This document shows, piece after piece, positions 3,187 to 8,699 of a DNA stretch of 64,000 nt. The translations under genes and the position numbers were made by a program. Every line of letters begins with the position of its first letter. Position 1 is the first letter of the stretch. Origin of the DNA: Haliotis rufescens (Eukaryota); NCBI RefSeq assembly GCF_023055435.1, contig NW_025963890.1, positions 43,462,001-43,526,000 on the forward strand, read 5' to 3'. The notes below the pieces were generated by a model, which made no database searches, had not been told where the DNA came from, and saw only the letters and a program-made list of their open reading frames with translations.

Positions 3187-6100
3187 ATGGAGTGTCTCAT
3201 GGCGATAGCCTTCACGGTGGCATCAGGTGCGTTTAATGCCTTTAAGCTTAAGATGATATAGACGTCATGAGCTTTTCCAAACGTTACCATGAATCTTTTG
3301 GTACATATTTAGTTTCAGAGCTGACCTCATAACATGTAGCCATCATCAGAGAATGATGATGTCAAAATCAAAATCGATGTTATGATATAACATCCAATCA
3401 ACAGCTATAGCTTTGAATAAGATTTGTTGGTTTGTTGTTTAACGCCGCACTCAGCAAGATTCCAGCTATATGAAGGCGGTCTGCAAATAATCGAGTCTGG
3501 ACCAGACAATCCAGTGATTAATATCATGAGCATCGATCCACGTAATTGGGATCGATGAGATGCATCAACCAAGTCAGCGAGCCTGACCACCCGATCCGGT
3601 TAGTCGCCTCTTACGACAAGCATAATCGCCTTTTACGGCAAGCATGGACATTTCATATTTAGATATGAATTAGATATGTGTATGTGTAAGTGCCATGCAT
3701 CATTACTTTCCCAATCAACATGTGTATCAGTTTTAATGTTTTATGAGTTCATTATTCGACAGTTTGCTCTACAAGCGCACCATGTACCAACTGTGACAGT
3801 AACAACGTGACCTGTGTTGACGGTGTGTGTCCACCTCGCTGTGTCAATGTGTCGTCATCTGGAGAGTGTCTCCAGTGTCGGGACTCCAGGTTCTATGGTG
3901 AACAGTGTGAACATGACTGTCCAGACACCTGTCTCAACTCTCGCTGTCAGATGAACAACACCCGTGCTGTGTGTACAGAGGGATGTGTGGCCGGGAGGAA
4001 GGGAGATAACTGTGGCGTGAACTGTCCTAAAGCCTGTACACAGTGTGAACGTTATGGTGATGGTTGTACAGGACCGTGTCAGAATGCCCTGTATTACGGT
4101 CCAAACTGTAGAACACCTTGTTCCTCCAACTGTACAGATGGATGTAATAGGATCACGGGGGAGTGTGACAGCTGTAAGCCAGGTTACAAGTGTGATGTTA
4201 CCTGTCCCCCTAACTGTAGAGATGGATGTGATAAAGACACGGGGGAGTGTGTCAGCTGCGTGTCGGGTTACAGAGGGAAGAACTGTAATGACACCTGTCC
4301 CCCAAACTGTAGCGATGGATGTGATAAGGAGATCGGAAAATGTGATGGTTGTAATCCAGGGAACAGTGGGAAGTACTGTAATATCTCCTGTCCTACCACC
4401 TGTAGGGAAGGATGTAATCAAGACGGCGGTTGCAACGAGACAGGTAAGTTGTACACATATTATTTTATTCATTTCAATCCCACGTTGGAATAAACACATC
4501 GAAAGTAGTTATGTTGTGAATTTGCTGGTGTCACAAAGAGAGGGGGTTGTGACAGTTGTGATACTAGAAATACGATAGGGATTATTTTGTGTTTCTCTGT
4601 CTTTACTTTGGAATACATATACTGATTGAAGAGGGCCATATCAACTTAAAGTCTACATGGACTAATCCGTTGGGATTCCGGGTTAGAATAGGTCCCCAGC
4701 AACATATGCTTGTTGTACGATGGACTGTACAGATGGATGTGAAAAAGACACAGGGGTATGTGGCAGATGGACAACACCCGTGTTGTGTGTACAGAGGGAT
4801 GTGTGGCCGGCAAGAAGGGAGATAACTGTGGGGTGAACTGTCCTACAGCCTGTACACAGTGTGAACGTTATGGTGATGGTTGTACAGGACCGTGTCAGAA
4901 TCCCCGGTATTACGGTCAACACTGTAGAACACCTTGTTCCTCCAGCTGTACAGATGGATGTAATAGGATCACGGGGGAGTGTGGCAGCTGTGAGCCAGGT
5001 TACATGGGGGACAAGTGTAATGTTACCTGTCCCCCCAACTGTGGAGATGGATGTGATAAAGACACGGGGGAGTGTGACAGCTTTGAGTAAGGTTACACAG
5101 GGGACAAGTGTAATGTTACCTGTCCCCCCAACTGTAGAGATGGATGTGATAAAGACACGGGGGAGTGTGACAGCTGTGTGCCAGGTTACACTGGGACATA
5201 TTGTAATGTTACCTGTCCCCCCAACTCTGGAGATGGATGTGATAAAGACACGGGGGAGTGTATAAAGTTAGGTGAGCATTGTTATCATCTTTGAATGTAA
5301 AATGTTAGCCAGGTACATATACATGTACCAAAGACAAAGGTTAGCTACGTAATTGAGTATTTCAATATTTCAGATGTAAAAAAACGAGTACAGGGGCTAA
5401 AAGTTATCCCAGGTATTCACTCAACAACCTTTAGAGGTTTTTTTGTTATAATAATTTGAGACATTACTTCTCATTTGATAACGATGTAAAGTATTTGTAG
5501 TCAGCATTATGCATCTATGTATGTGCTATATTTTAAATGTCTATTTTTAGGAAACAACGTAGTTATTGCTGTTGTGATAATAGCAGGGATCCTGGGCCTT
5601 GTGGTTCTGAGTGTGACCATTCCGCTTGTGTGTAATCAAGTACAGAAGAGGTTTGTGTACATACCATATCAAATCTGTTTATGCAGCATTTGGTGTTATT
5701 ACTTCAAAGCAACATTATGATACAACTATCCATGATATGAAAAAGTTGAGGTCCGCTCTTGTGTGAATGATTCTGAGATCGATAACATAATGTGAATGAC
5801 ACTTCCTGAACTTCCTGAACACGTTAACAATGTTACATTGATACCAGAGAAAAGAATTCTTCTAAACACAATGGGGGGCACGGGTGGTCTTGTCATCTTA
5901 GGCGCCGCGATTCGCTGTGCAGAGTTGCGTCCCTTGGGGCAGAAACCTATGATCGTTGGTTCGAATCCCGGTTCGCCCCGATTATGTTTCTAGGTTTGTC
6001 GGCACCATACCCATGCTCGTGGGTTTTACCGAAGTGGTAACCGCCTGAGACCTGCATCACTTCGGGGATTCCTCCCACATTAAGCTGACTAGAATACTGT

Positions 6101-8699
6101 TAAAAGCAATGTTAACACCATGAATGAAATAGTTTCAGGGAAATTGTCTAAGGAACGTGTAGTTAAATCAGGGAATGTGTATAATACCTGCTATTTTTTA
6201 GGGATTATGAATATTCCTTGCGAGAGTCAGACATTACAAATATTCCCGGATTTGACGTATTCCCAGTAACATTTGCCAGGAAGTTAACATAATGTTTTGA
6301 AAATAATGTCATGTCGACAGACCACATATTCTAAAAAATATAAAGGTTAGAGCACTAGGACCTGGAAACTATTTGTTGAAATTGTTTTTTAGAGTCCATG
6401 GCATGGATCAGACACCAGTGTCCGAGGGACCTAACCAATCTACACCATGGTAAACATTCACAAGATCCCTTGTACCTATAATGTTTATACAGCATTGTTT
6501 TCATTGCCGTATTTAAAAACAATTCAAGAACTTTATGCTCAAATTTATACCCTGAGCCTTTTACACATAAATCGCACTCTTTGGTGACTCGAGTTATGAA
6601 AATGCATATTCTGCGGCAAGTATGTAATACTTTTAGGACCACCTGTAGCTTATTTATCGATCACCTAAATATTACTTGCCCACCTTCATGTGCCTAGTTG
6701 GAGCAAACATATCACTCATCAAGATAAGAGCAATTTAATTTCTTTCTGTTTGCGTCGTAACTGCGTTTTAAGCTTAAGGCGACCCTGCTGCAGTTACCTG
6801 AATGTGTTGCCATTCCGCGCCGTCATGGTCAATGTAAGCCAAGACTCTACAACTCTCCCGATCAGCCAAGGCTCACATAAGTCAAGGAGCAATTTGAATC
6901 CATGAATCCAAACTGTCTCCGTATGCATTCATTTACCGGCCCTCGCACACAATAATTGACACAACACAAGGTTTAAGTTCACATACTTTTACTACTGCTT
7001 CAGTCCATCGCTCAAAATACAACTTCTAAACAAGACGGGATAGGATTGTTACAGAGTGGGAAAACGTACTGATGGCGGTGTGCCTCAGTCAACCCAAAAA
7101 CCCGCACTACTCTGCTAGTGCTAAAGGTATCTTTTTAAGGTGATCGAGCCTGGCCTGTCTTTGTCACATGTCCTAAGTCGACCTCATTCGTTAGGCAACA
7201 TACCAGTATCAACACGCGATTGTATGGTAATGGCAAATTACTGAGACTTGCTTTCTGGTGATTCACCATTTACTGATTCCCTTAATGACTTTATGAATTA
7301 TATATCTTATTACTTCTGTATCTCCAAAGTCCTCCATATTATTATTTATCAACAAGCAACTACAGCAACGAAGCAGGCCCACACTAATGTGGTCGGTCCC
7401 TGTGTTTAATTAAATGACAACCACAATATCAAAACAATCACGATTGTAATTGGTAAGTGTCCTCTCTCTATCGATTCCCTTTTCTGCTTGCCTTAACTCT
7501 AGCTTTCTATCATAATGGCTCTTTACCCAACACCGTGATGAAGCTATCACGGCGGTAGTAATAATTTCCCTGTAACAATTTTCTAATGTCTTGGGGATGC
7601 GTTTTTTACCTACCACTTTTGCACGGAAAGCCAACAAATCACACGTACGTACAATGCAAAGAATAACATAAAATGTACTACTAAACCCATGTTTCACCGT
7701 TCATAAGTGGAAGAACTATCAGTCCTGATATACGTAAATATTTAGTTTATTTACGTACATATTTTCCATGTCATCATCACAGAAGACAACAATCGTTTGC
7801 CTTAGGCGCGAACATGGTGGATTCGAATCCCACTGGTGACACTTTGCGTGAATTTGTTTTATGATCAGGGGAAATTATTGGGGAAAATTAAATTCTGTCA
7901 TTGCTAAGAGGTATTTAACTAAAAATTATATTAGTTAATGCACGGTGTCCGTTCCATTGCCATGGGTATGGTATGGTTTTTGGAGCAAATGCTTGAGGTA
8001 TCATCTCGATTTAATGATGTGGGCGTTGTTCTATGTCTTGGTTCATCGAGTGCAAAAGTCAAGGCAATCATATGATAAGTATAGAAGATACACTGACCAA
8101 GATCTTTGTTTTGTTTACCTGTAAAATCAAACGTCTAGCTCTTTATGTTTATTATATAAGTTCAACAGAGTTTGTATAAATATTAAAGTAATTTCATTAA
8201 TATCTGATCTAAATTATCACCATTATTCAAATGTATGGTGTGTCTTAAATAAATCGGTCAAAGTGATTTGCAGTAATTGAAATTGTTTTTTTACGGCAAT
8301 AGTGATTTGTAAACTTGCTTCAGTTTTCAAATTACTGACAACATTTTCAGATCCACGGCAAGGGTTGTTGCTCCAGACATAGAACAGGACATATCCGAAC
8401 ATTCCTATGACAACATTGATAACACATTCTTTGATATGGAAGACAAAGTAGCTGATGCTGTACCTGTTGACGATCCCAACAACACACGTTCCCTACGCAG
8501 CTCGCATCCCATAGGAGCATCCGCTGAAGAGCCGCAGAGAGCCAACCACAAGGAATTCATCACTGCACCTGTGATGAAAGGAGGTGCAGAGCGCCTCTCC
8601 AATGAAACTATAGTTGTCTTCCTGCCAAAGCCAAGTGTTCATGTGCACTATATCAATACAACGCCCAGACCAGAAGACATTTTGCACGATTACAATTAG
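3187..8699 (+). CDS. Receptor gene 1: EGF/laminin-EGF-like repeat type-I membrane protein (MEGF10/SREC-like ectodomain), ~402 aa, divergent tail
   Basis: Exons: 3187-3226 (MECLMAIAFTVAS, GT donor), 3763-4443 (Cys-rich repeats), probable 39-nt exon 5374-5412, 5551-5650 (TM VVIAVVIIAGILGLVVLSVTIPLV), 8351-8699 (tail with SYDNI, HYIN). All junctions are AG/GT, phases 1/1/1/2, total 1209 nt in frame. AATAAA at 9050. Confidence 0.8.
3424..3648 (-). mobile_element. SINE-like family B, 5'-truncated
   Basis: Matches the family B body (GGATCGGGTGGTCAGGCTCGCTGACTTGG...) and the GCGGCGTTAAACAAC tail. Confidence 0.85.
4723..5271 (+). pseudogene. Second, defective ectodomain copy inside gene 1 intron 2
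   Basis: Near-identical EGF-module DNA, but it lacks the 5' part of the exon, has an in-frame TAA at 5088-5090, and ends with the same donor sequence (gagtgtataaagttag|gtgagc) as the gene 4 ectodomain exon. Confidence 0.8.
5875..6118 (+). mobile_element. tRNA-derived SINE family A
   Basis: A-box-like GGTGG..GTC.T.TAGGCG and B box GGTTCGAATCC, with the same body as other copies. Confidence 0.85.

Follow-up and report, generated by a model that had tools for sequence, protein, structure and literature searches.

How does a receptor gene come to carry an ectodomain much like those of its neighbours on a cytoplasmic tail that resembles none of theirs? This question is raised by a stretch of 64,000 nucleotides from the abalone Haliotis rufescens (the window; positions 43,462,001-43,526,000 of the contig termed C112, in a genome, G000, of 1.33 Gb), which lies within a tandem array of single-pass receptors spanning C112:43.32-43.67 Mb. 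Seven paralogous genes, each with a short leader exon, a long cysteine-rich exon, a transmembrane (TM) exon and a tail exon, were found on the + strand of the window, the G+C content of which was 38-47%. In every array gene the whole EGF-repeat ectodomain is encoded by one symmetric phase 1-1 exon. The evidence set out below makes it probable that this exon has been kept alike in at least 18 genes by conversion or crossover, with cytoplasmic parts that are anciently diverged or unrelated.

A shared ectodomain exon and unlike tails

Homology searches were run exon by exon, and a self-BLAST of the window provided the pairwise similarities and breakpoints. The parts of genes 1, 3 and 4 were as follows.

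3187-3226 (+): gene 1 leader exon, MECLMAIAFTVAS, ending in phase 1 before GT; read from the sequence, with 11 of 13 residues identical to residues 11-23 of P0002, a protein model of H. cracherodii
3763-4443 (+): gene 1 ectodomain exon, 681 nt, phase 1-1, EGF-like Cys modules, end CNPGNSG..QDGGCNETG
4444-4760 (+): intron piece common to genes 1 and 3 (gene 3 counterpart, 25073-25385)
4761-5271 (+): gene 1 relic of the 3' part of an older ectodomain exon, with the former donor GECIKL/gt
5551-5650 (+): gene 1 TM exon, 100 nt, phase 1 to 2, NNVVIAVVIIAGILGLVVLSVTIPLVCNQVQK; size and phases as in the gene 4 TM exon (39865-39964)
8351-8699 (+): gene 1 tail exon, 115 amino acids and stop, with SYDNI, HYIN and a C-terminal DYN
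23412-23487 (+): gene 3 leader exon
23975-25072 (+): gene 3 ectodomain exon, 1098 nt, phase 1-1, CNPGNSG..TG end as in gene 1
25386-25703 (+): gene 3 relic of the older exon end, decayed, with several stops and the donor lost
26738-26843 (+): gene 3 TM exon, phase 1 to 2
27146-27713 (+): gene 3 tail exon, TKYWVI, ..KKTDSIIFIEQNCDL..YLSP, 79% identical to the gene 4 tail
35382-35463 (+): gene 4 leader exon
36354-37046 (+): gene 4 ectodomain exon, 693 nt, phase 1-1, older end type GECIKL/gt
39865-39964 (+): gene 4 TM exon, 100 nt
40241-40778 (+): gene 4 tail exon, TKYWEI ... FIEQNCDL ... YLSP

All three ectodomain exons have AG and GT ends, the TM exons run from phase 1 to 2, and at the TM/tail joint of genes 1, 3 and 4 the same Arg codon is split as AG/A. 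The TM exon is 100 nt long in gene 1 and gene 4 alike.

The initial annotation of this DNA had described genes 1 and 3 as sharing the 3' end of the ectodomain and the intron that follows, and this was borne out by a match of 84.2% over 971 nt (4119-5073 and 24739-25694), which takes in the exon 3' end, the intron (4444-4760 and 25073-25385) and the start of the relic exon. The exon end translates to CDGCNPGNSGKYCNISCPTTCREGCNQDGGCNETG in gene 1 and to CEGCNPGNSGEYCNISCPITCRERCHQDGGCIVTG in gene 3. The leader, TM, tail, introns and 3' flank said to be common to genes 3 and 4 were likewise recovered, with 77% identity in the leader region (23342-23657 and 35323-35643) and 71% from the TM exon through the intron to the tail (26395-27780 and 39473-40837), followed by a common 3' flank. 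The ectodomain exons of genes 3 and 4, with 95 nt of upstream intron, were 88.5% identical (23881-24657 and 36269-37036). Genes 2, 5, 6 and 7 had no DNA similarity beyond the ectodomain exon in the window self-BLAST.

The relic in gene 1 starts at the equivalent of exon position 3945, contains an in-frame TAA at 5088-5090, has lost one Cys and has no acceptor in the right phase. Its resemblance to the end of the gene 4 ectodomain, proposed on the basis of a common end string, was found to be 92.8% (4761-5304 and 36536-37079) and to reach 33 nt into the intron; the string itself, gagtgtataaagttag followed by gt, runs from 5256 to 5271 and from 37031 to 37046. The gene 3 relic was 79% identical to the gene 4 exon, approximately the background for these two genes (71-77% in leader, intron and tail). 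The intron piece at 4444-4760 was 91% identical to gene 3 and 88-96% identical to six places at C112:50.00-50.23 Mb, where the sharing covers its first 245 nt. The relics in genes 1 and 3 suggest the insertion, upstream of the old end, of a new exon end that brought its own donor. Within the intron piece, 4666-4723 is a short dispersed-repeat fragment, of which a 50-nt piece matches satellite-like arrays on other contigs (for example, at C584:1.30 Mb and C594:26.50 Mb).

Along C112, the window included, the ectodomain exon recurs at 30 or more sites within 43.318-43.668 Mb and at 6 or more within 50.00-50.23 Mb. A family of tails, here called KYWEI, was defined from 16 tails by a membrane-proximal motif, [HTKV][KRT]Y[WSC][EDV]I, and a C-terminal block; all 16 have the membrane-proximal Y..I and the block ..KT.SI.FIE...DL..V.V.YL.., and these 16 are the ones in the genome, all on the + strand of C112:43.32-43.54 Mb. 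Two receptor tyrosine phosphatase (RPTP) genes on the minus strand at the array end also carry the family ectodomain exon.

C112:43623811-43631161 (-): RPTP1 (L041), ectodomain exon 43630331-43631161, TM exon 43628799-882, protein tyrosine phosphatase (PTP) exons down to 43623820
C112:43659042-43667920 (-): RPTP2 (L043, L010), ectodomain exon 43666961-43667920, PTP exons 43661982-43659057

The RPTP2 ectodomain exon was 94.2% identical to that of gene 4 over 655 nt and 93.8% identical to the gene 1 relic; the gene 1 intron piece matched RPTP2 at 69%.

Divergence was measured in S1, the first 339 nt (113 codons) of the ectodomain exon before its 93-nt repeats (window 3780-4118), which was found in 26 copies. 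The S1 of gene 1 was 90-95% identical to 19 of the 25 others, including RPTP2 (94.1%), RPTP1 (91.4%), the cluster at 50.00-50.23 Mb (cluster 2; 92.6-94.7%) and the KYWEI genes A, H, 3 and 4 (92.6-93.8%). In a core pool of 18 copies (gene 1, RPTP1 and RPTP2, five of cluster 2, genes A-E, H, 3 and 4, and two more), the median number of synonymous substitutions per site (dS) was 0.100 (range 0-0.184). The low dS does not come from protein constraint, since the median ratio of nonsynonymous to synonymous substitutions (dN/dS) was 0.72. Outside the core, genes 2, 5, 6, 7 and I gave dS values of 0.27-1.3. Between genes of different tail subtype, S1 dS was 0.07-0.14 compared to a tail dS of 1.0 to saturated (0.126 and 1.74 for genes A and 3; 0.116 and 1.81 for genes H and 4), the tail values being meaningful by order of magnitude only because the alignments are partly poor and the values saturated. 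In the tail sisters, genes 3 and 4, S1 dS was 0.134 and tail dS 0.245.

Congruent phylogenies for all exons, named in the initial annotation as evidence against a mosaic, were not obtained. In reciprocal approximately unbiased (AU) tests on whole topologies for the 14 genes with both S1 and tail, the S1 alignment rejected the tail tree (delta lnL 91.6, p-AU 4.5e-5), and the S1 tree was in turn rejected by the tails (delta lnL 557.8, p-AU 2.7e-4). Monophyly of tail groups on the S1 tree was dropped as a test, there being too little signal, and the whole-topology reciprocal AU test was used instead.

These findings, namely the pool, the dS contrast and the tree conflict, argue that non-allelic conversion or unequal crossover spreads the ectodomain across unlike tails. 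They agree with the earlier proposal of recombination on the symmetric phase 1-1 exon, which the S1 median dS of 0.10 against a tail dS above 1, the conflict between trees and the relics all support. Besides the limit on the tail dS values, three observations weigh against such a reading. The S1 tree is a star, and single-clade AU tests rejected only one of five tail groups (A+C, p 0.002; the rest, p 0.15-0.31); the 93-nt repeats make the exon middle ambiguous for a base-by-base reading of conversion tracts; and no transcript evidence was obtained in this analysis for the cluster 2 genes.

The observed pattern consists of the similarities and exon phases, the splice of TM to tail, the existence of an orthologue, the contrast in dS, the conflict between trees and the relics; from it we infer that conversion is the process, in which order events took place and what may follow for signalling. 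Non-allelic gene conversion, together with unequal crossover between the 93-nt repeats, would homogenise the ectodomain exon, and the cytoplasmic parts (the KYWEI subtypes, the two RPTPs, the second-cluster genes and the orphan TM and tail of gene 1) would escape. Conversion would be confined to the ectodomain exon because homology between array members is largely confined there, and any version of the exon could be spliced in frame to any TM exon because the exon is of symmetric phase 1-1. Unequal crossover via the 93-nt repeats may be exemplified by a 34-residue difference between gene 1 and its orthologue and, in cluster 2, by a tandem 834-nt unit and open frames of up to 1128 amino acids. 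The exchanged cassette would comprise the repeats, the CNPGNSG..TG end, the donor and approximately 245-315 nt of intron, and in genes 1 and 3, RPTP1, RPTP2 and the second cluster a copy of it would have been placed before the older exon end. It could spread by conversion because homology lies on both sides, with S1 upstream and the old exon part downstream, and each recipient would retain the old exon end as an intronic relic.

Receptor phosphatases, the second cluster and other features

The ectodomain exons of RPTP1 and RPTP2 end in CNPGNSGKYCNISCP.TC.EGCDQDGGC.ETG followed by gtaag, as do those of genes 1 and 3, and cluster 2 has the same exon end. In RPTP1 a short relic of the older end lies 135 nt further on, and the H. 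cracherodii model uses that older end. Three further Haliotis species have RPTP models (P0012, P0014 and P0016), each with a precomputed PF00102 assignment. P0012 (590 amino acids) contains Pfam PF22784, PF22785 and PF00102 only, with a single PTP stretch (262-536) that matched LAR at E 2e-119. The CX5R loop is intact as VHCSAGVGRTG in P0012 and likewise over the exons of RPTP1 and of RPTP2. The WPD aspartate is absent, the motif reading WPAHG in P0012 and RPTP1 and WPAYG in RPTP2, compared to WPDHG in LAR D1. Loss of this aspartate cripples PTP turnover and can yield a substrate trap.

Cluster 2 (50.00-50.23 Mb; L004-L009 and L022-L024) lies 6.5 Mb away and contains at least 6 copies of the gene 1 exon-intron-relic module at 91-95% identity. 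The module covers gene 1 positions 3759-4688 and then 4863-5261, without the approximately 175 nt between them (4689-4862). An in-frame, Met-led hydrophobic stretch immediately precedes the exon, and there are tandem 834-nt exon-plus-intron units (L024) and EGF-repeat open frames of up to 1128 amino acids. No similarity to the TM or tail of gene 1, or to KYWEI tails, was found in cluster 2. Kilobases of minisatellite that are open in several frames were also observed there, as was a conserved TM-like frame, ..AFVLLV.IPVM.SLVCRKQTQDIDWQFDD.

All named protein matches were to Haliotis. The NCBI pipeline names the Haliotis models MEGF10/11/6, scavenger receptor class F-like or CED-1-like, and automated names such as MEGF10, SCARF1 and CED-1-like mask a lineage-specific family. 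Among the 6 proteins scanned against Pfam, the sole match to pass the cutoff was PF00053 EGF_laminin in the gene 3 ectodomain exon (E 4.3e-7); at E<=1 no family was found for the gene 1 ectodomain exon, TM or tail, or for the gene 4 tail.

Several repeats were seen within the window. In gene 4 intron 2, at about 37100-39000, open frames with the motif ..SPDLNPIEHVWD.. interrupt the similarity between the gene 3 and gene 4 introns; this motif is putatively transposase-like, of the Tc1/mariner type. A tandem repeat of approximately 1.1 kb at 19378-20632 is open in three frames (CTHYCSVHTTVLYTLL.. units), with many offset self-matches of 87-94% identity. Three interspersed repeat families of the size of short interspersed elements have many copies in the window and the cluster (3423-3647, 5864-6089 and 27966-28134 among them), and one pair (27966-28134 and 53863-53695) is inverted and 98% identical. 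A run of 153 N at 62208-62360 directly follows the ectodomain open frame of gene 7.

Gene 1: transcription, orthologue and origin of its tail

Gene 1 is a real gene, transcribed and conserved between species. Four contig runs were mapped on 3100-8800: X1 and X2 (the window species, two studies), X6 (another species label) and X15 (DNA-like). Record 6 of X1 (557 nt) and record 22 of X2 (713 nt) each aligned unbroken to 5549-5648 and 8349-8779/8800, and the joint, 5650-GT..AG-8351, is canonical once a 2-nt 'ag' ambiguity is allowed. Because these contigs span the joint from 5650 to 8351, the gene 1 TM exon and its odd tail belong to one spliced transcript. A candidate mini-exon at 6393-6450 was rejected, since the spliced contigs join 5650 straight to 8351. 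The intron bin at 4437-4627 had a depth of 0-0.9 in the three RNA-like runs compared to 109 in X15. In X15, contigs spanned 5232-5555 and 5526-5920 with 6 differences each; because they bridge the junction of relic, unique intron and TM exon, this junction exists in independent DNA.

The orthologue in H. cracherodii, P0002 (433 amino acids, named scavenger receptor class F member 1-like), has leader, ectodomain, TM and tail in the order of gene 1. Identity was 11/13 in the leader, 194/224 (86.6%) in the ectodomain, 31/32 in the TM and 98/115 in the tail, and the P0002 ectodomain has one 34-residue repeat more than that of gene 1.

The tail of gene 1 matched only itself in the 1.33-Gb genome and only P0002 in a HMMER pass over 1.84 billion protein representatives. 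In a word-indexed set of 5.8 billion proteins, residues 286-433 of P0002 (TM and tail) found only P0002 itself among 470 candidates scored, and residues 395-584 of P0011 found only P0011 and P0013 among 266 candidates, blanks of little force, given that a hit in this search depends on common 5-residue words. As the initial annotation had stated, a motif scan of the gene 1 tail found SYDNI and HYIN but not KYWEI, the regular expression for which had no match there. Resemblances such as HSYDNID to HKYWEIND and VHVHYINTTP to VNVKYLTP prompted the idea that it is a diverged KYWEI tail. This idea was not supported: against the profile of the 16 family tails the gene 1 tail scored 1.1 bits, a score reached by 282 of 2000 shuffles; hhalign against KYWEI tails gave a probability of 0.1-0.2%; and SYDNI reads SYDYKE in the H. 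cracherodii orthologue, in which HYIN is kept. By profile and hhalign comparison, the lack of relationship between the gene 1 tail and the family tails holds. The companion claim of an unrelated leader says little, as every array member has a leader unlike those of the others.

It is a plausible, if tentative, alternative that the mosaic is real but without signalling meaning, gene 1 being a weakly expressed by-product with a fast-drifting tail in a family that shows concerted evolution only. Contig depth over the gene 1 TM and tail was low (6.8 and 10), P0002 alone shared the TM and tail among the 470 candidates from the 5.8-billion-protein set, SYDNI was not conserved between the two species, no Pfam family was found at E<=1, and close species differed at 17 of 115 tail and 30 of 224 ectodomain residues. 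On the other hand, the open frame of the tail, the position of its stop and long identical stretches (ERLSNETIVVFLPKPSVHVHYINTTP and others) are kept in H. cracherodii, with 31 of 32 residues identical in the TM; the exons are spliced at canonical sites; and among the genes of the pool that share the ectodomain are phosphatase genes that are intact and genes with tyrosine motifs conserved in their tails.

As to how gene 1 arose, on balance we lean towards its being an array member by descent, with a TM and tail that were replaced or have diverged beyond recognition. Origin in place is favoured by where in the array and on which strand gene 1 lies, by its exon plan and phases, by the length of its TM exon and by its split codon. 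It is rather unlikely that an unrelated single-pass membrane gene instead captured a 1.55-kb cassette (3753-5304), leaving the leader, TM and tail foreign. Such a capture would explain why similarity to paralogues begins 10 nt before the exon and stops 33 nt past the relic, why the flanks (2600-3770 and 5272-8800) had no match in the fetched cluster DNA except to interspersed repeats, why the tail is unlike the family tails, and why a search of window 1-13300 found no relic KYWEI tail near gene 1 (the best E was 4.6, and the control recovered 6 of 6 known tails, though all six were in the model). Bare flanks are not special to gene 1, however, since genes 2, 5, 6 and 7 are also bare outside the exon; gene 1 lies among the other array genes in their orientation and has their four-exon plan and phases, a 100-nt TM exon and the AG/A codon; and no donor gene for its tail was found in the genome or the protein libraries searched.

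Some observations count against gene 1 as an array member with this gene structure. The profile and hhalign searches provided no positive evidence that its tail descends from a KYWEI tail. The splice of the gene 1 ectodomain exon (4443) to its TM exon (5551) was not directly observed: the two spliced contigs continue for 26 and 34 nt on the 5' side of the TM exon, and both candidate ectodomain exon ends finish in 'ag'. For the leader there was no spliced contig, and the sole contig there (X6, 3139-3257) continues into the intron. X1, X2 and X6 were called RNA by an automated guess plus the spliced joint only. Finally, RNA-like contigs of 61-139 nt with 1-5 differences (approximately 99% identity) and a depth of 10-130 cover the relic at 4776-5076, with depth exceeding 100 at 4776-4999. 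These may be a paralogue signal, their depth far exceeding the 7-10 of the TM and tail; they reflect either a highly expressed, unseen paralogue or transcription of the relic.

For the shared ectodomain itself, purifying selection on the protein alone, without exchange, is highly improbable as the cause of the likeness. Cysteine spacing and many residues are indeed conserved in all copies, but S1 dS is at least ten-fold below that of tails of different subtypes at a dN/dS of approximately 0.7, similarity enters the intron (95 nt upstream in genes 3 and 4, 33 nt downstream for the relic and gene 4, and 245-317 nt for genes 1, 3 and cluster 2), and the exon and tail trees conflict. A collapsed or chimeric assembly of near-identical paralogues is scarcely credible: the family is repetitive, gene 7 contains the 153-N run and no single contig was listed across 4443-4761, but independent DNA-like contigs bridge the relic to the TM exon, spliced contigs of two studies join TM to tail, the independent genome annotation of the sister species has the same exon set, and genes 1 and 3 have the same exon-intron-relic layout at 84% identity only, hence as separate copies.

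Tail motifs and comparison with known systems

The tails were scanned for short tyrosine motifs, of which the first two below may occur by chance. V.Y..I, which resembles the immunoreceptor tyrosine-based inhibitory motif (ITIM; [SIVL].Y..[IVL]), was found in 3 of 18 tails scanned (A, C and F, all three with VTYCEI), and T.Y..I, resembling the switch motif (ITSM), in the tails of genes 3, 4 and t43446; both forms were absent from gene 1 and P0002. The tail of gene 7 (63562-63999; C112:43525562-43526278; P0022) contains YWEI-x9-YVSI, with a spacing like that of the activation motif (ITAM), as does the H. asinina model P0018. No Pfam family corresponded to the KYWEI and FIEQNCDL blocks. The TM of gene 1 has no charged residue in its hydrophobic stretch and its tail is 115 amino acids long, so it is not a short-tailed, charged-TM activating partner. 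As judged from its sequence, the gene 1 tail is an orphan without recognisable signalling domain, and the two RPTPs and the ITIM-, ITSM- and ITAM-like tails would be better leads to unlike outputs.

The array bears on how invertebrates diversify their immune-type recognition and keep it in balance. By resemblance to paired receptors, the array receptors may have opposing outputs. If outputs differ, paired-receptor logic would have evolved independently of immunoglobulin (Ig) and lectin receptors; even if they are the same, the array is a clean natural case of concerted evolution limited to one exon, in which dated relics of the replaced ends survive. A bolder proposal, speculative and improbable as a whole, is that the array is an invertebrate counterpart of paired receptors: one exchangeable exon over approximately 20 genes would be joined to ITIM-, ITSM- or ITAM-like, orphan and WPD-less phosphatase outputs, a single microbial or self ligand would meet opposed or graded outputs, and the relics and cluster 2 repeats would be stored donors.

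Several known systems resemble parts of this array. PTP domains without the WPD aspartate are known in IA-2/PTPRN and in many D2 domains; like these, the abalone RPTPs have WPA with CX5R intact, and unlike them they have it in the only PTP domain of the protein. MEGF10, MEGF11, Draper, CED-1 and SCARF1/2 are likewise single-pass proteins with many EGF-like repeats and tyrosine motifs in the tail. In contrast to MEGF10, Draper and CED-1, the abalone genes lack an EMI domain (none in the gene 1 and gene 3 ectodomain exons by Pfam at E<=1) and NPxY (0 of 18 tails scanned), and the whole ectodomain lies in one exon.

The vertebrate paired receptor clusters include KIR, LILR, SIRP, Siglec, PILR and CEACAM. 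As in these, the abalone array has clustered paralogues, ectodomain exons kept near-identical, probably via conversion, unlike TM and cytoplasmic parts, and, in some tails, candidate motifs of ITIM, ITSM or ITAM type. In contrast, the abalone ectodomain is built of EGF-like Cys modules, not of Ig or lectin domains, the array has no short-tailed partner with a charged TM, and one class is a receptor tyrosine phosphatase. Of the paired-receptor logic put forward in the initial annotation, clustered paralogues with near-identical ectodomains on unlike tails were found; the charged-TM activating partner of paired receptors was not.

A literature search, in which subscription journals were thinly covered, found no paper on the abalone array, and a term search of PMC12627906 gave nothing on EGF, MEGF or PTP. 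MEGF-gene/RPTP clusters have recently been tied to schistosome resistance in snails, according to the accessible part of PMC12297450. There, the SudRes1 schistosome-resistance region of Biomphalaria sudanica is described as a set of paralogous MEGF-domain genes, including receptor-like PTPs with MEGF and galactose-binding domains (MEGF/GBD), with diversity in the extracellular parts and with EGF domains gained or lost from one haplotype to another. Exon homogenisation between RPTP genes and their non-RPTP neighbours is not described in that part of the source. Unlike the abalone P0012, which has one PTP and no galactose-binding domain, the snail RPTPs have such a domain and PTP domains in tandem. 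Both are gastropod clusters in which MEGF single-pass genes are mixed with RPTPs that have MEGF ectodomains. On sequence grounds the abalone array appears to resemble vertebrate paired receptors but to fail their charged-TM test, and the SudRes1 cluster is the closest published system found.

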